Origin: Trichosphaerium sp. ATCC 40318
Lineage: Eukaryota > Protista > Tubulinea
Length of the DNA: 55,071 bases
Assembly (NCBI GenBank): GCA_038496445.1
Contig: JALMLS010000467.1
Location: forward strand, 1 to 55,071
Direction of reading: 5' to 3'
A program made the translations under genes and the position numbers. The notes under the pieces were generated by a model. It was not told the origin of the DNA. It made no database searches and was given only the letters and a program-made list of their open reading frames with translations. Numbering within the stretch: the stretch's first letter is position 1; the number at the start of each line of letters is the position of its first letter. Shown piece by piece: positions 38,196-51,800 of the stretch.

Positions 38196-38208
38196 TTTCG
38201 GAGTTTTA
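38196..38208 (+). repeat. Target-site duplication, left copy (TTTCGGAGTTTTA)
   Basis: Identical 13-mer at 46203-46215 on the other side of the element. Confidence 0.92.
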
Positions 38209-38232
38209 GTTAGTTTATTGTTATTTTGTTAA

Positions 38233-38298
38233 GGCAGGTCATTGAACAAAGCGCCCTAAAGTCGCATTCTCTTCCCCTGAAGATTGTTCGATTCTGCC
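38233..38298 (-). ncRNA. Structured 3' UTR (multi-stem) of the retroelement
   Basis: Nested pairings GGCAG/CUGCC and GAACAA/UUGUUC enclose a UCUUC-AGGG-GAAGA hairpin and a weaker GCG...CGC hairpin. Confidence 0.65.
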
Positions 38299-38310
38299 GT
38301 GTTAGATTTA

Positions 38311-41300
38311 TTATTTACCTCTATCAATTGGAAAAATTTCAGTAATTGGTATATTACCGTATCTGATATTCCAGCGTATGTAATCTGTGCTTACGTATTG
38401 TTTAAGGTGTTTCTTTATTTTTATTGTTCTATTGCACCTTACGCGGTATTTTTCGTATAGTAATCTCGTATATAATGTGTTGAGTTTATTCGCTAATTTT
38501 GTGGCAGATGCAGGTTCGATTTCGAAGTTTGTTTCTAGTTCTTTTACAAATTTTTTAGTTACGTATCCTTGTGCTCCACGGTATAGGTTCGGGTCGTTAG
38601 CTTCTTCTTCAGTAGTGAATATCCATTTCACTTTGAATGGTTTTGGGTTATTAATTTCTTTTTTTCCTATTATCGCTAGTTCTAATCTTTCGTTTGACGG
38701 TTCCTCCTTTCGGAACCATTTACATTTACAGAAGGAGTTCTTTGGGTTCACAATATTGTTGTATTTCTTTTTATTGCTTACTTTATCCTCTACGTTGTTT
38801 TTTAGGTGTTCTTGCGTTATTCGGTTTGCGTGATGTTGCAGTCTTTCAAAGAAGTATGTTGAGTGACATAAGACAAAGTGCGTAAAGTTTTCTTCTTTTT
38901 CTAATTTCTTACGGGATTGGCATATAGAACAAAAAGGATTAGGGTACATTTTCATGTATCTCGCTTGAGTGATTGGGAATTTTATATGTTTACCTTTTTT
39001 ATGCATGAAATTATTTAATGGAAGGCCGTTGCTTCTTACTTTTAACAGCCATGACGATATCGTTCTGTCAATATGTAGTTTATTTTCTGTAACGCTGGCT
39101 TTGAAATTGATATTTTTTCTCGTTCTACAGTGTTTGTTAGAGTTCTCTTCGAGTTTGTCGAAAAAATATTCTGTAAAGCTATTTGTTACATGTTCTCTCA
39201 ATCCTGATTCAAGTATGGATCCATTGAACGTTATATTCCAGTTTGGTAGACCTTTTGGGATTCCTATAACTTTATTGTTACTTCTTTCTTTATCCGCTAG
39301 TTTGTCTGCTTTAAAATTCATTAGTAAGAGTTTTTGCGTGATGATGGTACCGTGTTTACTTTCCAGTTGTTTGATTCGTTTAACGATATTAGGTTTATTA
39401 GCTTTTATTTTATCTTCTAGGGTGTGACTAGGCACCCATAAGAATCTAATTGGTTCCGATCTTTTATTAATTTCTCTGTGGATTCTGTTAATGGTATGGT
39501 AATGCGGTTTGTTTATCTTTTTCTTTTTTGGCCAGTTATTCCAGTTGATGATAGATTCTATTGCTGATGTACAGTCTGAGGCAATCATTATTTTGGTGTC
39601 TAATGGAGATATTTTTAGTACTACTTCTATTGCTTCTAATTCCGCGTTAATTGACGTTTTGTTAAATAAAACTGGGAGGCTAATGTTGATATTATTTGGG
39701 GCATATATGCCTATACCTGCTTCGCCTTTATTTGATAGAGAGCCATCTGTAGCTATTGTGATATATTCATTGATGATGAGAGCGTTATTGTTGAATTCGG
39801 TTTTATCTCTTCTTGTCATTTTTCTTTCTATCTTTGATAATTCGTAATTGTGTTGTAATCTTAGGCCTGTTTTTTTTAGTAATTCTGAGGCAATCGTTAC
39901 CGAGTCTGAGTTTATATCAATATCTAATTCTTCATTTGTATTACATGAGGTACAGTACGTGGGTGAAGAGAAACATCTTCTTTCCGTGATTTTCCGTAGT
40001 GCTATATTGTCTGAATTTAGGCATTTTGAGATTAGGTTATTAACGTAACCCACTGTCTGATTTACGAAGAGGGATTTTAGGTTAGCGCCTGTAAGGGGTA
40101 TTAGGAATCTTGCATTGAGAAGGTTATGACGTAGTTTGGCTGAGCCTTTAATTATACCTATTGCGTTGTTGTCCATTTCGTTAAGTGCTTCATTTCCCAA
40201 AAAGATCGAGGTGCTTACAAAATCTACAGCTGGATTAATTACTGTATTGATTAGTTTAACTTTGTTGTGTACCGATAGTTTATTAGACCAAAGCGTCTTA
40301 AGTCTTTTTCTGTGAGTAGCAACTGTTTTATTTATCTGTTTTGTAAAGTCAAGGTTTGCATTCGTTAAAATACCTAGGTCTTTGTAATTTGTTTTTTCGT
40401 CTATGACCGGTATGATTTTGTCTTTCCAGATTAATGATGGTATGTTTTTCAAGTTTACGTACTTGTTGTATGTTAGGGCTGATTTGGAGCAGTTTATTTC
40501 CATTCCGAAAAAAGAGCACCATTTTTTTAGTATTTTGAACATTTTTTCCATGTCTTGTTTAGATTTGGCCATAATTTTCAGGTCATCCGCATATGCTAGC
40601 ACTGCAATTATGATATCTGACCACATATACCCCAGGTTAGATTGTTCTAATTCTTTAAGTAAGACGTTAATGAAAAGGGAGAAAAGGATAGGGCTTATTA
40701 CGTCACCTTGTCTAACGCCTTTGTTTATGGGAAATTTCTTTGATCCTACTGGGATATTTAACTCTGTACTCACATCTTTCAGTAGGGACATAATTATGTC
40801 GCACCATTCTTTGGATAGTCCTTGTATTTTCAGTGCTGCCAGAAGGGCCCAGAATTGTACCGAATCGTAAGCCTTCTTGAAATCTATGTAAAGGATAAAT
40901 AAAGGTTTTTTTTTTAAATTTGCGTCTTCTAGTATTTGGTGATACATTTTGTGAGCCATGTGGATCGATCTATTGTTATAGAACCCAAATTGGAAATCTG
41001 ATATTACCTTGTTCCTCCTTAGGATACTTGTTAGTCTCTTCGTTATAAGTGTGCTGTAGATTTTGTACATCGAGTTTAAGAGGCATATTGGGCGGTATTG
41101 TGAGACGTCATCCTTTTTCTGTTTGTTTTTTTCAAGAAGGATCATCGTTGATTCTTTCCATTGCCCTGGTATTTTCTTTGTTTTGAGGCATATGTTGCAT
41201 AAGTTCTTTATTATTTTTATATTGTCGTATGAAAGTTCTTTATATATTTCGGCTCCTAGGCCAGTCGTACCTGGTGCTTTGAAAGACTTCATCTGTTTTA

Positions 41301-44300
41301 TAATTGTGGTTATTTCTAGCGTATTTATACTACATATTTCCTGATTGTATATCGTGTTGAAACTAGCTTTAAAGTTAGGAGGTCTTGAGAGTGTAGGTAT
41401 TGGACATTTTTTACTTTGGTCTTTGTATGGGTGATCGAAGTTGCTTTCAAATAGTTTAGACCAAAAGCTATAAAACTCATTGAAGATGGATTCGTCATCG
41501 TTCATTATTATTGGAATACCGTCGATTGAGCTTATAACACTTTCTGTGAAAGAGTTAGTTCCTTTTTTGTCGTTGAATTGTTTTAAATATTTGTATTTCT
41601 TGTATACCGTACGGTTCGATAGTTCTGAAAGTTCATCTATTGATCTGTCTACGCAGATTTTCTTCATGTTGTTTGTGAGGGCTTTGATCCAATGATTTAG
41701 TAAATTCGTGTTCTTTTTTAATATGATTTTTTGTACCGAGTTTTTTTCTTCAATTCTTGGGATCCTTAGGAGTTTGTTTTCTTCAGCTTTGTCCATCCAT
41801 TTATTTACTTTGTTTATATTTCTATTGATAGGTCTATTAGGTTCCTCATTAGTTATTTGGTTATTGATCTTTCTACACATATTTTTTAGGCTTTTTAATC
41901 TTTTATGTTCTGAGTGTTCCACGTACGGTTTTCTGTTGTGATTGTTGTTTCTGATTCCTACTTCTCTAGCTGTGTATTTAAATAATTCTTTTGTAAAATT
42001 CGTTACTGCTCTGTCGACATAAATGTCACTTAGGTACTCGTCTTCTCCTGCATTTTTAATTAAATTCATAGTGTAGTCAGAGGGAGAGAAGAGAGGGATT
42101 TTGAGCTTTAGCTTTGGACTTCTCGTGTTTAGTTTCTTCTTTGTTTTTCTTGTCTTGGGTGTGTTCTTTACTTTGCTACATGGGATGAAACGTGTTGTCA
42201 ATATAATTGGTTTATGATCTGATGCGCACTCGTCTAATATTGTAATTAGTGATGATGTTTTTTTGGGATTTGTGGTTAACGCGAAGTCGATTCTTTCATG
42301 GAGTGTACCTTTACCATATTTCTTTATTTTTGTATTTAGTTTGAAGGTAAGACTCTTAGTACAGTTCTTTAAGTGATCTATTGGGTCTGTAAGGCCGTTA
42401 TGTAACTTAAATGTATTGAGAATGTTTTCGTACTTTGTTTTGATTTCTATGAATTTTTCGTTGAACCAAAATTGTTTATCTTTGTCGTATTGGGCCATAT
42501 TCCAGTCCCCTATGAGTATTACGTTATTGATATCCTTATTTTTGTTTGTCATTTTTTTTGTGAACTTACTGATGATTTCGAGTTGTTCGATTTTGTTGTG
42601 GATTTTATAAGCGCATAGATACACATTGTATATTAGCGTTAGTTTGTTGTCTTTGTTTTTGATGGTGATGGCTTGGAAGAAATTATTTGGATGACTAATT
42701 ATTTTTGTAACTTTCATTAGCTCCTTGTGAACGAGGATTGCGAGGCCGCCTTTTGCTCTTGCCGATTTCGTTGTTAGTTTGTTTTTTAGGTCTATTTTTT
42801 CTGCATCAGACCAAGACATGTTATCTATGAGATCAGAGTTAGTCTTCATGTACGTGTTATTTATTTCATTTCTATTTGGGACGTTTGCGAAGAATTTGAA
42901 GTTTATGAAGTGTTTTTTGAGTACTTTGTTGAAGGCGTCGCTCTTTATTTGTTCCGTGGATCTATGTATTTCTTGAAGGCATATGATATCTAGGTTATTA
43001 TTTTCGATTAGTGCTTTCACATTGCTTGATTTAGTTTCTATCCTACCTTTAATGTTCCATGAGGCAATGTTTATCTTGTTTTTGTATGATTTCGTAGTTT
43101 TTTGTTTGCCTCCTCCTCTTAGACGCCTTATAATTGTTATTTTGTTATTGATAAGCGTACTTACGCGTGACGATGTAGTAACGTACTTGAAACAGGAGAG
43201 AAAGAAAAAGTCGTCAATCTTGGCATCAGAGTTAGGTTTCATTATGTTATTTAGGAGCGTACTTATCTTTATATCATAGTGACATGTGTAGAGGGTGGAA
43301 AAGAAGCCGTTGATTTGGATGGTCTTTGGTTTTCTAAATTTGAGGACTTGACAAATATTGTGAACTATACGTGGTATGATTAATCGATTAATACAAATGT
43401 TAGAGGAAAAACCATGTTTATTAGGTATCTTAACATGTACGAAAAGGGGCTTTCGGTTGAACTCTAAAAATAATTTGGGTCTTAATGCTGTCGTAGCGCG
43501 TCGTGCATCGTATCTAGAATCTTTTATCGCCAAAACGAAGAAGTCTTTGTTTCTTGTTAATCTTGAGAGAGAACATTCCTTTGAACTGTCTTTCAACAGT
43601 CTTCTTAGCAGATACACTACCGAAACTGACAATATAATGCGATGTCTTGTTACCTTTTGCTGTGCAATCATAGCAAATACTGCGGGCGTATACCTAATAT
43701 CCTTAGAAGCTATGTAAGTTGTTTTTGTTACCTTAATTTCAGCGAGTGCAATTAAAATATCTTTAGGAGTGCCCATCCATGTCTTACCAAGATACAAGGA
43801 GAGATTCTTGTCAAATTTCATTCTACAAGGAATAAAGCGACCGAACCCATTATCTTCTGCTAGAGCAAGGTGATATCCAGCGTTCTTGAGGACTGTAACT
43901 ACTGAGCTCTTGTTTTGGTTTGGAGCTAAGATAATATCGGCGATAAATGACGTCCTTGATATTCCGTGGTTCGAATACGTTTGAGAGTCTACTATTACCG
44001 CTGGTTTTGGAGCATTGGGTTTCCATTTGGTCAAGATGTCGTTAACATTGAAGGGCTCGGTGTTACTCCATAGCGTCAGTATACGGCAGTTCATGAAATC
44101 TTCCATATAGCGAAGGAAATCAATCAACGTTTTGGTTCTGTCGATATCGAAGAAGGTATGAGCACTGGCAGGAATCAAGTTCTTTCTCAGCGTATCTTTG
44201 AAGAATTTGACTTCTTCTAAGTACGCTTCAGGAACAGTACCAATTTTCAAACCAAAAACGAATGCGCAATGACCATGTGGAAGGGGAACTGATGCGTAAC

Positions 44301-46131
44301 CAACATATCCTATAGCATGATGAGTATTTGTTAACATTAAATAAAACTGTTTTTTTAGATTTTTTGTATTTTCGTAATTACTGCAATTGTTTACATTGTA
44401 TTTTACAGTGCGAGAGGTATTGATATTTTTGAAGGTGTTGAAACGGGCATAGTTTAGTTCGTATTTTTTGAAAACAAGGGAGGATTTAGTTTTTAGTTTA
44501 GAGAAAATGTTCGTTTTAGATTTGTTTAATACTACATTTTCAGAAAAGGAAAGAGAGTGAAGAGATAATGTCTTCTTTTGTTTAAAAGAGGAGAAAATAT
44601 AAAAGCGAATCTTAAAAATAGGGTTTACGTTACCTTTAGTTAGCCAGTTTCTGAATTTAGTAGGTAACTCTATCATCTTATTAACATCGATATCGGGAGA
44701 TATTGGACCGCCTGGGTAGAAAACACCGAAAGCCGCTGAGAAGTGGATGAGCTGTGTCCATTCCACCAAGCGACCATAGCGCGTCGAAAGATCAACCTTA
44801 TCTGGGTCATGTTGTTCGTTTGCAAAGATACCATCCTCGTCCTGAAGAGAGATTAGGATTTTTTGGAGTTTGAGAAAAAGAAAAGAAGGTGATACAATAC
44901 TTACTTCCTCGTCCTTGTTGGATGCATTAACAAAAGAGAGGAGAAGGTTTATATTCTCTTGTTCTTCTCTCTTTGTAATGGAATCCAGGACTTGTTTTTC
45001 GAGGGTTGCTTTGAAGGGACTATCTTGGAGTGATCCTAGTCTTACCATAGCTTCTTCACGGGTCATATTGGCGAAACCATTGAGACGATTGTTGTTGTTA
45101 TTTGCAGACATGTTGTGTATGTGTTGATGAGGCGACAAAAAGGATAAGGACTGAAAATAAATTATTTTATTAATTTTATTATATGTCCGTCGGGAGTTTA
45201 TGGGGGAGTGTGGTTTTCCATCACTTGTGTTATATTTGTTTCTGTTGTATCTTTTTTTGAGATTTGGCTTTGCCGTAAAATGTTTACTTCTACTTCTTTT
45301 ATTCTTGATTTCTGAACATTCGTTGGAGTAATTTGTGTTGTTATTTGGGGTGTTGTTTAGGGACATTATGAGTTCTGGTAAGATTTGAAAAGCTATTATG
45401 CGAAAATATAAAGAGACGAGAGGGAGAATTTTAAAGTTTACTGTACTTACCTTTTTGTAATGTACGTTGTTACGCGTTTTGCAATTGTGTGGGATTTTTG
45501 TATTTTCTGTAAGAAGGAGGAGCAAGATAAATGTAATACTTGGTAACGTTACGGTTGCCAGGATTAAAGGTTTGGGTAGATTTGTTTTTATTACGTTTTT
45601 TACAACATTTTTTACTAATCTTGAGGGGAAAGAGGTATATGTGAGGTTGTGGTAACTAAGCGTTTTGTGTTTTGTGTGTTTTCTGTAGATGAATTCCGTG
45701 TTTATCTTAATTTGTCTATTCTCTTGATGGTAATGAGGTTGATTTATACGTACTGGCACGGTGTCTGTTACTAGTCTTTTGTGGTTTGGGTTGTATCTTT
45801 CGAAAGATTTTGTGTTTGGGTTGCATATGTCTATCGACGATAGGTACAAACCTAACACTAGAATTCTCATTATGATTATTGATATTTTCTTAAGGTTAAT
45901 TCTCGATTTTTGGGGAGAAGCTCGAACTCGCTTCTTCGCTACACCGCGGCACCTTATGGTATAAGCCTTGGCCGGTGTAATTGCACGATATTCCCTCGAT
46001 TTTTTTTTGTTTTTTGTTTTTTGTTTTTGTTTACGGGGAACTTGTTCCCCGACCAGCACGTTAGCCGACGGTTGCAAAACTTTTTGGCCATCGACCAACG
46101 TACCGGTTCCTTTTGACGTTGTCGATGGCAT
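38311..46131 (-). CDS. 2606-aa retrotransposon polyprotein: leader + ORF1-like region + RLRGG + APE endonuclease + RT + RNase H + zinc knuckle
   Basis: APE: ASWNIKG, CLQEIH, GDWN, ERIDFAL, SDHKPI. RT: KAPG, YRPICLL, DFKKAYDSV, GVRQGDVISP, YADD (40582-40593). RNase H: ATDGS, AELEAI, SDC, WVPSH, N..AD.LA. Knuckle: C-x2-C...H-x3-C. Confidence 0.95.
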   Translation of the reverse strand: MPSTTSKGTGTLVDGQKVLQPSANVLVGEQVPRKQKQKTKNKKKSREYRAITPAKAYTIRCRGVAKKRVRASPQKSRINLKKISIIIMRILVLGLYLSSIDICNPNTKSFERYNPNHKRLVTDTVPVRINQPHYHQENRQIKINTEFIYRKHTKHKTLSYHNLTYTSFPSRLVKNVVKNVIKTNLPKPLILATVTLPSITFILLLLLTENTKIPHNCKTRNNVHYKKVSTVNFKILPLVSLYFRIIAFQILPELIMSLNNTPNNNTNYSNECSEIKNKRSRSKHFTAKPNLKKRYNRNKYNTSDGKPHSPINSRRTYNKINKIIYFQSLSFLSPHQHIHNMSANNNNNRLNGFANMTREEAMVRLGSLQDSPFKATLEKQVLDSITKREEQENINLLLSFVNASNKDEEVSIVSPSFLFLKLQKILISLQDEDGIFANEQHDPDKVDLSTRYGRLVEWTQLIHFSAAFGVFYPGGPISPDIDVNKMIELPTKFRNWLTKGNVNPIFKIRFYIFSSFKQKKTLSLHSLSFSENVVLNKSKTNIFSKLKTKSSLVFKKYELNYARFNTFKNINTSRTVKYNVNNCSNYENTKNLKKQFYLMLTNTHHAIGYVGYASVPLPHGHCAFVFGLKIGTVPEAYLEEVKFFKDTLRKNLIPASAHTFFDIDRTKTLIDFLRYMEDFMNCRILTLWSNTEPFNVNDILTKWKPNAPKPAVIVDSQTYSNHGISRTSFIADIILAPNQNKSSVVTVLKNAGYHLALAEDNGFGRFIPCRMKFDKNLSLYLGKTWMGTPKDILIALAEIKVTKTTYIASKDIRYTPAVFAMIAQQKVTRHRIILSVSVVYLLRRLLKDSSKECSLSRLTRNKDFFVLAIKDSRYDARRATTALRPKLFLEFNRKPLFVHVKIPNKHGFSSNICINRLIIPRIVHNICQVLKFRKPKTIQINGFFSTLYTCHYDIKISTLLNNIMKPNSDAKIDDFFFLSCFKYVTTSSRVSTLINNKITIIRRLRGGGKQKTTKSYKNKINIASWNIKGRIETKSSNVKALIENNNLDIICLQEIHRSTEQIKSDAFNKVLKKHFINFKFFANVPNRNEINNTYMKTNSDLIDNMSWSDAEKIDLKNKLTTKSARAKGGLAILVHKELMKVTKIISHPNNFFQAITIKNKDNKLTLIYNVYLCAYKIHNKIEQLEIISKFTKKMTNKNKDINNVILIGDWNMAQYDKDKQFWFNEKFIEIKTKYENILNTFKLHNGLTDPIDHLKNCTKSLTFKLNTKIKKYGKGTLHERIDFALTTNPKKTSSLITILDECASDHKPIILTTRFIPCSKVKNTPKTRKTKKKLNTRSPKLKLKIPLFSPSDYTMNLIKNAGEDEYLSDIYVDRAVTNFTKELFKYTAREVGIRNNNHNRKPYVEHSEHKRLKSLKNMCRKINNQITNEEPNRPINRNINKVNKWMDKAEENKLLRIPRIEEKNSVQKIILKKNTNLLNHWIKALTNNMKKICVDRSIDELSELSNRTVYKKYKYLKQFNDKKGTNSFTESVISSIDGIPIIMNDDESIFNEFYSFWSKLFESNFDHPYKDQSKKCPIPTLSRPPNFKASFNTIYNQEICSINTLEITTIIKQMKSFKAPGTTGLGAEIYKELSYDNIKIIKNLCNICLKTKKIPGQWKESTMILLEKNKQKKDDVSQYRPICLLNSMYKIYSTLITKRLTSILRRNKVISDFQFGFYNNRSIHMAHKMYHQILEDANLKKKPLFILYIDFKKAYDSVQFWALLAALKIQGLSKEWCDIIMSLLKDVSTELNIPVGSKKFPINKGVRQGDVISPILFSLFINVLLKELEQSNLGYMWSDIIIAVLAYADDLKIMAKSKQDMEKMFKILKKWCSFFGMEINCSKSALTYNKYVNLKNIPSLIWKDKIIPVIDEKTNYKDLGILTNANLDFTKQINKTVATHRKRLKTLWSNKLSVHNKVKLINTVINPAVDFVSTSIFLGNEALNEMDNNAIGIIKGSAKLRHNLLNARFLIPLTGANLKSLFVNQTVGYVNNLISKCLNSDNIALRKITERRCFSSPTYCTSCNTNEELDIDINSDSVTIASELLKKTGLRLQHNYELSKIERKMTRRDKTEFNNNALIINEYITIATDGSLSNKGEAGIGIYAPNNINISLPVLFNKTSINAELEAIEVVLKISPLDTKIMIASDCTSAIESIINWNNWPKKKKINKPHYHTINRIHREINKRSEPIRFLWVPSHTLEDKIKANKPNIVKRIKQLESKHGTIITQKLLLMNFKADKLADKERSNNKVIGIPKGLPNWNITFNGSILESGLREHVTNSFTEYFFDKLEENSNKHCRTRKNINFKASVTENKLHIDRTISSWLLKVRSNGLPLNNFMHKKGKHIKFPITQARYMKMYPNPFCSICQSRKKLEKEENFTHFVLCHSTYFFERLQHHANRITQEHLKNNVEDKVSNKKKYNNIVNPKNSFCKCKWFRKEEPSNERLELAIIGKKEINNPKPFKVKWIFTTEEEANDPNLYRGAQGYVTKKFVKELETNFEIEPASATKLANKLNTLYTRLLYEKYRVRCNRTIKIKKHLKQYVSTDYIRWNIRYGNIPITEIFPIDRGK
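43417..43422 (-). terminator. Candidate polyadenylation signal of the nested ORF1 transcript
   Basis: AATAAA ~90 nt after the spliced-ORF1 stop; weak alone because the strand is A-rich. Confidence 0.4.
43514..45111 (-). CDS. Nested spliced ORF1-like gene (~390 aa, RRM-like folds); exons 45111-44905, 44841-44634, 44309-43732, 43693-43514
   Basis: Introns: 44904-44842 (GTAAGT...CTAAT...TTCAG, 63 nt), 44633-44310 (GTAACG...TAG, 324 nt), 43731-43694 (GTAACA...CTAAG...TTAG, 38 nt). Exons total 1173 nt and end in TAG. The last exon completes a beta-alpha-beta-beta-alpha-beta pattern. Confidence 0.75.
45150..45183 (-). promoter_or_regulatory. Candidate internal Pol II core promoter (TATA + initiator)
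   Basis: TATAATAAAA begins at 45183, 31 nt upstream of the A (45152) of TCAGT; ATG in an ACAAC context 41 nt further downstream. Confidence 0.5.
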
Positions 46132-46151
46132 AGATCTTGTTTTATTTAATT

Positions 46152-46202
46152 AGCGTCGTTGCCCAGGGTGAACTGCGTGGAAGTCGCTGGTGTTGTCACC
46201 CC
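46152..46202 (-). ncRNA. Minimal HDV-like self-cleaving ribozyme (no P4), 51 nt
   Basis: GGGGUGA(P1)-CAACACC-AGCG(P2)-ACU(P3)-UCCACGC(L3)-AGU(P3')-UCACCCU(P1', G1.U wobble)-GG(P1.1)-GCAA-CGA(J4/2)-CGCU(P2'); G1 abuts the TSD. Confidence 0.88.
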
Positions 46203-46215
46203 TTTCGGAGTTTTA
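46203..46215 (+). repeat. Target-site duplication, right copy (TTTCGGAGTTTTA)
   Basis: Identical to 38196-38208. Confidence 0.92.
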
Positions 46216-46488
46216 TTAATACCCTGGTGACTTAAGACAAGGAAAATCCTATTCTAGAATTTCTTAGTCGATCATTTGAGCGGGTTAGAGGACATTAAGC
46301 AATAATATTTTTATCTCTTATGCATGTTGTTCGAGCAAGTTCAGAGTTGTCTATCTGTCTCACAAAAACTAACAATAACACCATCACAGGTAATTGTAAG
46401 GTGTCATTGTACCGGTTTTCTTGAACAGTATTTTTAAACCAAACATAAATACAATTTATTATTATTTTCCTAAAACATAGTGTTGTTT

Positions 46489-48572
46489 TTATATCTCTTC
46501 AATACTTGTAAGCTCGCCCGTAACTATAGTTTCCTCAATTTTTGTATCACTAGGTTGTTCGAGGGGTTCAGACTGACATGATATTTGTTCATTTTTGTAT
46601 CTGTCATTTGTTTTCAAATTCATGTCGATGATCGTTGGCCTACACCGTTTAAATACGTTTTTATAAATCGTATAAAACAAGCGTACTTTGAAGTTGAATT
46701 GGTGCCAGACGAATCAGCTGAAAGTGCGTTTCTTGGAGGATGTAATGAAAAAAGTTGAACAGTTATTAAGGCGTTTAATATCATAGAAAAAAACCAATGC
46801 CACAATACCCAGCCAGTTGGTGTTGAAGTAACGCCAGTTCTATTACAACAAAATAAATACGAGAGCTTGCAACAAACACGTGATAACAATATAACGTACA
46901 GTAATGATACATACAGCAGGTAGGCCAAAAATATAACTATGACAACAGCGTACAGTTGTGCTCTTATCTGTATTGAATTAAGGTTAGCGGGAAATGTCAA
47001 AGTTGAAGGAACATTCGAGGTACCAGAAAAAGCTGTTTTCTTGTTTCCTTGTTTTTGGCTTGTATTTTCTTTACTCTTCGTTTTAACCGATAAAGAGTAA
47101 TACAACAATAAACTAATACTATAGTGTATCCAACAAAGTACAATGTAGGAGATATACCTTGAACAACTCCTGGGAACTAAACCAAGAAATAAGTGAGAAA
47201 ATGTTGGCTGCTGTTCATACCCGAAAGAAAAAGTCCGCTATTGATATTGCTATTTGTTGAACAATGAGAAATGTGACCCAAGCATAAAATATCCACCTTT
47301 GAATAAACGAAATTACTCTATAAATTATAGAAAAGATAATACCTGAAACGTGGGAGACCTGGATGAACCTGAAACTTGAGTGACTTCAAAAGAGTGTGCC
47401 TAAAAATAAAACAATGAGGTAAAAAAACGCAGGAAAAAAGTAGGTACCACCACAAAGCCATTAAAAATAGAGGTGCAATCACAATTGGCACTGGTAATGT
47501 CTGTATAAACCTATTAATAACACAACGTTTAGCTAGATGAAATTTAGGATAGGTAACTATACCTCGAACCCAATAAGGAGCTATTCTTCTACATCCAAAA
47601 GGATCAAGAGAAACAGCAATCATAATTCCTTATTAAATGTTGGTTATAACTACGAAATAACATAAACAACTGTCTATACTGTACCTATGGTTGAAATCAG
47701 GCATAATATTATGCAGCATAATCCAACAGTTCTCTTACAGCCACCATAGTGCCTTACCAAGCTAACAATTCTTTGAAACAACCATTAGTATTAATTGTAG
47801 GTAAAAAAGCTTCAACGTACCTGTACACTGCGAATCCGGCATTGAACAAACTAATTGCAATTAAAGATATTTGCCATGCCCACATCCATCCAGATTCGAA
47901 TAAATCTATGAACTCATTGCGTTCTGAAATGTGTCAAAATACACAAAATAATTAAACAAATGAGTAAATAATGATTACCTGTTATCAGTTGAATGAATAG
48001 TGTTTGGTTTGGTTGTAAGATAGCTTCCATATCTTTAATAAGCACTGTGACTATCGGTACATTGATGTCAGTTGTGTCACTCCCGTCAAGAACATACATT
48101 TCCTGAACAACAAACAAATAAGGATAGAATACCCAAAAAACAGAATTACGTTTCCAGCCAAGTCCCGAGGAGGTCCTAATATTGCGCACAACACTGCAAT
48201 GGCTCCTTCGTCTTGTAATTTACGATACTTCGGTTCGTAAGGCTTGTCGCAACCTCGTAAGAGAATTATTTTTCCTACAACAGAAATGAATTTCATTGTA
48301 AGGTTTTTTTTTCTACACGCAAGATTTGTTACTTTACCCGTTTTGTTTGAATGTGTTGCTTCAACAAGCTGACCTCGGACAGGGCTGAAATCTACAGTAT
48401 TACCATCGTATTTTTGAGGCCACACGCGTATAGATACGTTTGATAACGTCTGAGGTGTTATTACGTGGAATGACGCATACACGTGATAAACCAGAGTTAA
48501 AAATACTATTTGTGTAAGTTAAAAACAGTATTTTTCGATGAGAATACCAACTACTCGCGTAAAACCTGCCAT
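46489..48572 (-). CDS. PA-domain + multi-TM (7TM-like) membrane protein, paralogue 3
   Basis: Starts MAGFTRVVG; exons homologous to paralogues 1 and 2; ends TSIEEI*. Confidence 0.75.
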
Positions 48573-48848: not shown

Positions 48849-51800
48849 ATGTCAGAAACACCAATAAGCACTTTAAGCCAGAATTTAGTGCTCCATATGT
48901 ATCCGATCATATTTTTTTTTTGTCTGTAATTATAAGTAGTACTGTACGCGTATTTCTTTGACTCCACTAGCAAAAACATAAAGGGTAGCGTAGAAAAGTT
49001 ACAAGTAAAGCCGTTAAGTCCCACAGTACTTCCTGAGCCCGACCACAGGTACTTTAGAGGGGCTACCCGAATTCTCGCAGTTTTTAACCAAATTGAGTGG
49101 ATATTTTTACATAAACGCGCGTATTAGCATCTAAACGTTGTATTTAGTTGGGCTAAAGAAATATGCGTATCCTGTAGTTTATTCACAAGCGCAACTTGCC
49201 TATGTGCACCACAATACACGCAATTCGCGTCTTTGGACAATCAAGAGTACAATTTTAACCAAAATATAACCTTTCCAATTAAATACAGGTAACTTCACCA
49301 TTCAGCGCCCATAAAATGTTCTACCTAGCTTATTAACTGTCAAACTGACATTCATTGTAGAGATTTGCCAATCGACAGCTTCTTATTTATTGCCATCTGG
49401 GGCGTTGCTAGTACGCGAGAATTTGTGCCTATAGCTTCAAACCTCTTGCCGCTTTTTGACAAGCAATCATGGTACAGACCGTTTTGAAAACCAAAAAACA
49501 ATTCCAAAAAAAAAAACAATAATGTTTAGCTTGGATTGATTTGACGTGTGATTTTTTAGGTTGATGCGTAGAGGAAGTCAAAAGCTTACCTTGTTTCTAT
49601 TGGATAGTAAATCTCTATCGTTGAGGACAGATAGCTTACACTACTCACATACAGAACACAAGAAAATACTGCAAAATGCACGTGATGAAATCATTTTTTG
49701 AAACTGAATTTTGTATTTTTTTGTTTTGTGCTCTTCAGCGAATTGTAAGAAATTCTTTTGTGACGATAATCTCAATCTATTTTCTTTAACACCATAAGAG
49801 CCAGAATTTCACAGGACAGTAATTGGCGTTAATCTGTTATTGATTCCTTTTTTTCTGCCTTCTAATTTGCTGTTTTTAGGTACTCCAACAGGCAGGTTTA
49901 GATAGTCTAACAAGAAGTACAGAACAGCCTCTTGGTATTGAACAGCTTAAAGAGCGCGGTATTGTACCGTTAGCAAATATGGACCCGTTTTTCCAAGATG
50001 AAGTTGCTCTGTTTGTTGAGCTTCCTGTACTCCGCAACCCAATAATCTTCTATCAAAACGTTCGTACTCTGTACACAATAATTACTTGTACTTACCTTAA
50101 CGTGTAGTTCTATGAGCAAGAAAACAGTGATATGGAGTACAAACATTCTTATCCTTTTGGTAGCTATGTTTTTGACCCTGAAACTTATTGTGACAACCCA
50201 GCTGATAAAGTACGCAACAAATACTCTCAAATACAATTACTTAAAGCAAACTCCTCAATCCTACAATGCACTTATTACCAATTTAGATGCATTGGAGTCT
50301 TATGCGCGCTGAAACAAGTGATTATGATGCAAGAAGACTTCTTCCTAATACAGACGAACGAAAGACAATACAGGTATAGCTCCTATGTTTTTTCTTTGTA
50401 GATGGAAGTATTTCTTTGTGTGACATGTGTTTTAACCTACGACCTTATTAGATGATATTGGCGTACCCGCCATCAAGGGAACTGAATAACCGTGAACAGA
50501 ATATTCTTTGGCGTTATAGATATTATCTTCAAAAAAACAAGAAAGCACTGACAAAGTTCCTTCGATCTTCTGTTCGTTGGAGTCAACAAAAAGGCAAAGA
50601 AGCTGTACAGCTTCTTAAAGAGTACGTACCTATACGATACTTTGATCAGTAAAATGATAGGTGGGAGGCATCCTCCGGCTGTTACAGGACGCTATGAATG
50701 TTGAAAAAATATTTTATTTACTAGTCATTAGGTGGGAACCTATTGAAACTGTTGATGCATTAGAGTTATTGTCAAAGGATTTTTCAAGTCTGCCTTGGCC
50801 TGAGATAAGCACAAAGATTAGACAATACGCAGCAAGCGTACTTAAGAAATCTTCAGACGAAGTACGTGTCAGAACAGTAGCCCTTTATTGTTTTTTTTGT
50901 ATATATACCATTAACCACTTTGTAGGAACTTCGCTATTGCTTGCTGCAACTTGTGCAAAGTCTGCGCTACGATCGTGTAGCTTCAACGTCTGCTGTTGTT
51001 GCGTTACTAATTGACCGAGCTTCAACTAGCTTTTACCTGGCTAATAACTTGTACTGGTATGCCTTCTTTTATTGACTCTGTTTTCTGTGAAGAAAAGTTT
51101 TTAATTTAGTTGATAGGTTTCTCACTGTTGAAAAAACGAGTACACTCAACGACAATGACGATGTAGAATTTTTTACTCAAGTTTTTGATATGTTTTGGAG
51201 AAAACTAAGCAAGGTAACGAATGGTTGTAGAAATAATTTTAAAAAAACCTTTTTAGTTTTCAATCTCATTTTTTTCTTCTTTCCTTTCTTGTCATTTCCA
51301 ACTTGCTTTGTTGCCTTTGTAAATGAAGTTACTTACTTGGTGTTAATGAATATCAATAGACGCCAAGTGGTCGTATCTTTCAAGGACACCTTCAAAAGCA
51401 GCATGAACTTGTTGATATTCTCACTTCTGTTGCAAATAAAATATCGTCAACAAGTGACTTTGATAAAAAGGTACAAACCAAACGACGTAAAAAACATTTT
51501 AGTTATTTTCAAATACTAATTTAAAAAAAAACAAGGAACGTATGGCTACAGCGGAAATAGAAAAAATATCCAATAAATTCACTGGTGTACCAATTCCTGC
51601 AAATCCTGAACTCATAATCCATAAGATAAAACGTAAGTAAAATATCTACTAAATTTCTAACTCGTGACTAACAACCCTGACACGTGGGGTTTTTTTGGAG
51701 TTATTTGTGTTCGGTTTTTTGTTAATTTGTTTATTTTAGCCAAAGTTAAGGTTTTTACATCAGCTCAAGCACCTATGAAGGTTGATATTATAACACAAGA

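Follow-up and report, generated by a model that had tools for sequence, protein, structure and literature searches.

A predicted HDV-like ribozyme at the exact 5' end of a protist LINE probably fits a long canonical fold better than a minimal, P4-less one

Introduction

HDV-like ribozymes are known at the 5' ends of LINEs. Examples are found in R2, in the RTE-type drz-Agam-2, and, as L1TcRz, in L1Tc/NARTc. Their proposed role is to release the element from host co-transcripts (PMC3185411; PMC4908430). Across the HDV-like family, structure is conserved more than sequence (PMC10879173). Minimal forms that lack P4 occur almost exclusively in Caudoviricetes, and none was found in the eukaryotic genomes searched (PMC10879173). 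Our own literature search returned no paper linking HDV-like ribozymes with amoebae and no report of P4-less forms in retrotransposons.

Here, we scrutinized a 55,071-nt stretch of DNA from Trichosphaerium sp. ATCC 40318, hereafter the window, in which an earlier, sequence-only reading had placed a minimal, 51-nt P4-less ribozyme at the exact 5' end of a mobile element. It named R2, RTE, and L1Tc as elements with HDV-like ribozymes and described minimal forms as known mostly from metagenomic and phage sequences; phages account for nearly 99% of minimal forms (PMC10879173). In silico evidence and cDNA ends both lend good support to an HDV-like double-pseudoknot core positioned exactly at the LINE 5' end. 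The label "P4-less", in contrast, is probably wrong, with a longer canonical fold providing the better fit.

Results

Boundaries and Coding Content of the LINE

The window carries a full-length non-LTR retrotransposon (LINE) of 7,994 bp on the minus strand (38209..46202), with an exact 13-bp TSD, TAAAACTCCGAAA, at both ends. The 5' copy (46203..46215, minus strand) and the 3' copy (38196..38208, minus strand) are identical, while the bases just outside the two copies differ on both sides. Given an exact TSD bounded by unlike outer bases, 46202 is the first base of the LINE, and we therefore number nucleotides along the minus strand with G1 = 46202. The flank base 46203 (nt -1) lies immediately 5' of the predicted scissile bond. 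Hence, the coincidence of predicted cleavage site and TSD boundary, as proposed in the sequence-only reading, holds to the base. The insertion site is non-rDNA, and the LINE is single-copy within the window, where neither blastn nor tblastn detected a second copy.

A single 2,606-aa ORF (38311..46131, minus strand) encodes an AP endonuclease (residues 1023-1306), a reverse transcriptase (1672-1893), and an RNase H (2122-2237), making this an APE-RT-RNaseH-type LINE with its domains in one ORF. The nearest protein relatives of the APE-RT-RNaseH region were at most 30% identical, and searches with the N-terminal 1-1000 aa of the ORF and with aa 341-500 found no homologue. No other contig encoding this exact ORF was found in the contig search, and two distant relatives, L049 and L050, each contained no HDV-like match. 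The first AUG of the LINE RNA occupies nt 72-74 (46131..46129), and upstream of it the ORF frame is interrupted by a stop at nt 51-53. Over ORF codons 1 to ~1,000 (43134-46131, minus strand), protein-like stretches alternate with low-complexity, intron-like ones, with the frame open throughout. A (CAAAAA)n-type microsatellite within the ORF (45996-46037) codes for a K/Q-rich stretch, and contigs break there.

A Ribozyme Core at the First Base of the Element

The first 44 nt of the LINE (46159..46202, minus strand) comprise the P1 5' strand, J1/2, the P2 5' strand, P3, L3, the P1 3' strand, P1.1, and GCAA. P1 pairs nt 1-7 with nt 32-38 over 7 bp, including a G1.U38 wobble, and P3, nested inside it, pairs nt 19-21 with nt 29-31 over 3 bp (ACU/AGU). 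L3 reads UCCACGC, P1.1 joins C23 and C24 to G40 and G39 (CC/GG), and GCAA follows at nt 41-44. Together with a P2 pseudoknot and a candidate catalytic C heading J4/2, the features of an HDV-like ribozyme (P1, P3/L3/P1.1, P2, and the C) are present. Two completions of this shared core are available: P2 can form between nt 15-18 and 48-51 (4 bp) or between nt 12-18 and 145-151 (7 bp), and the candidate catalytic C is either C45 in CGA or C139 in GGCUAA. Since nt 45-51 are used by both, the short and the long fold are mutually exclusive. Every pairing and motif previously listed for 46202..46152, that is P1, P3, L3, P1.1, GCAA, CGA, and P2, is indeed present.

Two further pairings touch this region. 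In the nested minimum-energy fold, GCG (nt 16-18) pairs with CGC (nt 26-28) over 3 bp (46175-46188, minus strand), an alternative that would sequester P2a and L3 and is a possible misfold competitor. In addition, CCAGGGU in the flank (46221-46227, minus strand) can pair with ribozyme nt 34-40, comprising the P1 3' strand and the G's of P1.1, and is thus a potential competitor of P1 in read-through RNA from this locus.

A Predicted Long Completion with a Candidate P4 and a 7-bp P2

In its long form, the predicted ribozyme spans ~151 nt (46202..46052). Directly after GCAA, CGACG (nt 45-49) pairs with CGUCG (nt 133-137; 46066..46070, minus strand) to form a 5-bp P4 base, with G138 (46065) opposite A44 as an A44.G138 closure. 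J4/2 follows as CUAA (46061..46064, minus strand). Its first base, C139 (46064), is the candidate catalytic C, and the surrounding GGCUAA matches the Rfam HDV consensus letter for letter. The P2 3' strand (46052..46060, minus strand) then supplies UGCUGGU (nt 145-151), complementary to ACCAGCG (nt 12-18) along 7 bp including one G.U, with a duplex energy of -9.4 kcal/mol. J4/2 thus consists of CUAA plus two bases (6 nt), unless P2 adopts an alternative register that pairs C143 with G18 and G144 with C17 at the cost of a 2-nt bulge. Both the 7-bp P2 and the CUAA J4/2 are canonical in the published list of theta and minimal ribozymes (PMC10879173). The loop enclosed by the P4 base is large, and the P4 domain as a whole (nt 45-138) would hold the first AUG and an inner helix, P4a, of nine Watson-Crick pairs (nt 74-82/108-116), AUG and helix together covering 46087..46131 (minus strand).

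To gauge how readily such completions arise, nt 1-44 were kept fixed and the next 216 nt were shuffled 20,000 times, with all allowed registers counted. A long completion (P4 base and P2 jointly) that equaled the real one appeared in 4 of the 20,000 shuffles (0.02%) and in none of the 508 natural-sequence controls, figures that apply to a model found post hoc, from one sequence. The short completion, scored with the same fixed core, appeared in 2.6% of shuffles and 0.6% of natural-sequence controls. The sequence-only reading had called the ribozyme minimal and P4-less, and on this point it fares poorly, the canonical downstream completion being the rarer of the two by chance (0.02% vs. 2.6%).

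Two other placements of the 3' elements were rejected. Rfam itself puts P4 at G46..C84 and takes nt 87 as the catalytic C, a layout that leaves P2 without a partner further on, and a P2' candidate at nt 103-109 is accompanied by neither a P4 nor a suitably placed C.

The 3' strands of the long fold are contested by a 20-bp hairpin (nt ~96-151; -34 kcal/mol), which competes for nt 131-151 and, with a 7-bp hairpin behind it (nt 152-169), covers 46034..46107 (minus strand) at the start of the ORF. Summed energies were ~-43 kcal/mol for the long fold (nested part plus P2) vs. ~-47 kcal/mol for P1 plus the hairpin, a gap within error, and sequence order allows P4a to form while the hairpin's 3' arm is still untranscribed. 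The 171-nt leader as a whole folds at -61.6 kcal/mol, with a z score of -3.7. Base composition changes sharply along it, with GC at 63% in nt 1-51, 14% in nt 52-73, and 54% in nt 74-171, against 35% for the whole element; the two GC-rich hairpins sit within the first 33 ORF codons, inside this 54% island.

Possible Roles for Both Completions or for the Short One Alone

Two readings give both completions a part. According to the first, which is built from the predicted pairings and which we regard as rather unlikely, the 51-nt fold would cut as the RNA is synthesized and the 151-nt fold would then exchange with the 20-bp hairpin, thereby freeing the AUG. If true, P4-less HDV-like ribozymes would have here their first representative in a mobile element of eukaryotes, and the leader would be a ribozyme-to-translation switch on uncapped LINE RNA. 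In the second, the short fold would act early and be replaced by the long one, or a switch between ribozyme and 20-bp hairpin would expose the AUG after cleavage. This too is compatible with the data: each completion is individually rarer than chance, the two folds share nt 45-51 and exclude each other, and the energies of the long and the hairpin fold are close. Nevertheless, it is derived wholly from one sequence, and a short completion seen in 2.6% of shuffles could itself be chance, such that we consider it distinctly unlikely.

The short fold uses C45, G46, A47, and P2' CGCU (nt 48-51; 46152..46158, minus strand), the same bases that form the P4-base 5' strand in the long model. Its P2, AGCG (nt 15-18) with CGCU, is 4 bp long and has a duplex energy of only -3.3 kcal/mol. 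If this fold were the active one, with GCAA as linker, C45 as catalytic base within CGA, and the 4-bp P2, then the downstream complementarities would be unrelated hairpins of the ORF start. All its pairings exist and could form once nt 51 is transcribed, and an AU-rich spacer (nt 52-73) begins right after that nucleotide. HDV-like ribozymes of the minimal, P4-less kind do show activity in vitro, and the combination of a P3 of ACU/AGU with an L3 of UCCACGY is also found among the theta ribozymes listed (PMC10879173). However, the dimensions of the short fold are atypical. L4 is 4 nt, J4/2 3 nt, P2 4 bp, and J1/2 7 nt, compared with 5-8 nt, 4-5 nt of the form CNRA..., 7 bp, and 1-3 nt, respectively, in ~120 theta and minimal ribozymes (PMC10879173), placing it outside the range in all four features of a supplementary list that is bounded by its authors' descriptor. 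Assignment to the minimal class, as made in the sequence-only reading, is weakened accordingly. The nested fold of the 51-mer is also unremarkable (z -0.36). With the long completion the rarer of the two by chance and with minimal forms so nearly restricted to phages, the 51-nt form is the less probable active fold, and we consider it quite improbable that it acts alone.

The 5' End of the LINE RNA

Contigs from runs X1 and X2, which derive from one sample, matched 46038..46202 with zero differences and continued past 46202 into CCCGTACTCTGCGTTGATAC on the plus strand. The reverse complement of this extension ends in ...GTATCAACGCAGAGTACGGG, a template-switch oligo used to label RNA 5' ends (PMC9245221). 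The contigs ending in this oligo are therefore cDNA, which shows that the family is expressed as RNA and puts the 5' end of that RNA in the opening GGGG of the element. The junction fell at 46202 in X1 and one G short of it in X2; because the G's of the oligo merge with the GGGG of the element, the position of the end carries an uncertainty of 1-3 nt. Template switching works on uncapped ends too (PMC9245221), so the cDNA 5' end fits ribozyme cleavage, and it fits initiation at +1 equally well.

Upstream of the LINE lies the terminal exon of a host gene on the same strand (46491-46641, minus strand). Its AG acceptor occupies 46641-46640, and its stop, near 46491, precedes the LINE insertion by ~276 nt. 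A spliced exon of this gene (46639..46520) was recovered in contigs of X1 and of X3, the latter representing organism B. Read-through co-transcription from the host gene is possible, and none of the contigs matching the locus crossed 46203/46202 into the flank.

An internal promoter at +1 could also set the 5' end, leaving the HDV-like fold inactive or as a back-up (cf. Pr77/L1TcRz). The template-switch end at nt 1-3 and the absence of a read-through contig are compatible with this, and the first 77 nt of L1Tc do combine promoter and ribozyme functions (PMC3185411). A promoter, however, gives no reason for the full core, with its L3, P1.1, GGCUAA, and P2, to stand at precisely that base, and we consider it very improbable as the explanation.

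Chance and Homology Tests of the Core

A generic P4-less descriptor detected the 46202..46152 site in the window. Its background was 0.47 matches per 110 kb of shuffled sequence, falling to 0.017 when a CC/GG P1.1 was required, and with CC/GG and G1.U both imposed there were 0 matches in 60 shuffles. The core alone (P1, P3, CC/GG P1.1, and G1.U) occurred 0.03 times per shuffled window and must, in addition, start at the base after the TSD, making chance an unlikely origin. The loose P4-less descriptor also matched an AT-rich segment at 51098-51150 (plus strand) with a P1.1 of AA/UU, which we take as noise given the chance rate of 0.47 per window.

Alignment to the Rfam HDV model covered P1, P3, L3, and GGGCAAC and scored 24.5 bits (E 0.07-0.22), short of the RF00094 gathering score of 50 bits. 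Neither a tRNA nor any other RNA family came up when the window was searched with Rfam. Viral and metagenome contigs served as a control: a search with the core pattern gave 48 and at least 120 contig matches, respectively. Among the core-pattern matches listed from both sources, 0 of 168 possessed P1, P2, and P3 together; with the helices absent from those listed, these matches were dismissed as chance. A mere chance resemblance at the LINE 5' end, with no ribozyme at all, would sit comfortably with a single sequence, a subthreshold Rfam score, and an unremarkable 51-mer fold, but is barely credible for a core this rare in 110 kb of shuffled sequence, placed on one particular base, for which the completion odds multiply further and whose helices were found in none of the sequence-only core matches listed.

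Discussion

The rarity of the core, its position at the first base of the LINE, and the cDNA ends suggest that the element very probably begins with a functional HDV-like ribozyme of some form, catalysis being predicted from the fold. As to which form, we favor, on balance and with moderate confidence, a genuine HDV-like ribozyme whose active fold would be the long one of ~151 nt, both its catalysis and its completion being read from the predicted structure.

In this long-fold model, the LINE would be transcribed, possibly as read-through of the same-strand host gene ~276 nt upstream, and the nascent RNA would fold into a nested double pseudoknot. The active fold would combine the P4 base (nt 45-49/133-137), C139 in GGCUAA, and the 7-bp P2 (nt 12-18/145-151). 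In a general acid-base cleavage, the C at the start of J4/2 would promote attack by the 2'-OH of 46203, the last base of the flank, on the scissile bond 5' of G1. The product RNA would have a 5'-OH, start at the first base of the element, and retain the ribozyme; as the ribozyme stays on the cleaved RNA, every new LINE copy would inherit it. A further possible function of the folded 5' end is cap-independent initiation at AUG72.

If so, ribozyme-defined LINE 5' ends extend to a protist lineage and to a single-ORF APE-RT-RNaseH element, with in vivo support for the 5' end. The locus further illustrates that a 51-nt "minimal" match can head a larger canonical ribozyme, which calls for caution in motif-based P4-less assignments. 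Were the short fold active instead, minimal HDV-like ribozymes, nearly phage-only so far, would gain a eukaryotic function.

The short fold has the same length as drz-Mtgn-1 (51 nt), and its L3 (U-CC-ACGC) is that of theta and minimal ribozymes, some theta members also sharing the ACU/AGU P3. Unlike those ribozymes, the short fold departs in L4, J4/2, P2, and J1/2 (4 vs. 5-8, 3 vs. 4-5, 4 vs. 7, and 7 vs. 1-3, respectively). Theta ribozymes belong to gut Caudoviricetes and often lie directly 3' of a tRNA, whereas the site described here heads a eukaryotic LINE with no tRNA or phage context.

The resemblance to HDV (RF00094) encompasses G1.U, a 7-bp P1, an L3 of UCCNCGC, and a CC/GG P1.1, as well as GGGCAA, a predicted A.G that would close P4, and GGCUAA with its C, a candidate catalytic base here; L3 and GGGCAA match HDV exactly or nearly so. 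In HDV, G74 stands opposite A43, matching G138 opposite A44 in the LINE. Unlike HDV, the site scores 24.5 bits vs. the gathering score of 50, its predicted P4 domain is branched and ~94 nt long, J1/2 is 4 nt, and J4/2 is two bases longer or else P2 is bulged; it also resides in a nuclear retrotransposon and not in a circular RNA.

The ribozymes of R2, RTE, and L1Tc differ from the present one in genomic setting. Here the host is a protist and the element is a single-ORF, 2,606-aa APE-RT-RNaseH LINE with protein relatives at most 30% identical, inserted outside rDNA with a 13-bp TSD and, on the long model, with its first AUG in the P4 domain. In agreement with those ribozymes, a predicted double pseudoknot starts at the first base of the element, would cleave upstream of itself and be inherited with each copy, and the transcript 5' end lies at +1.
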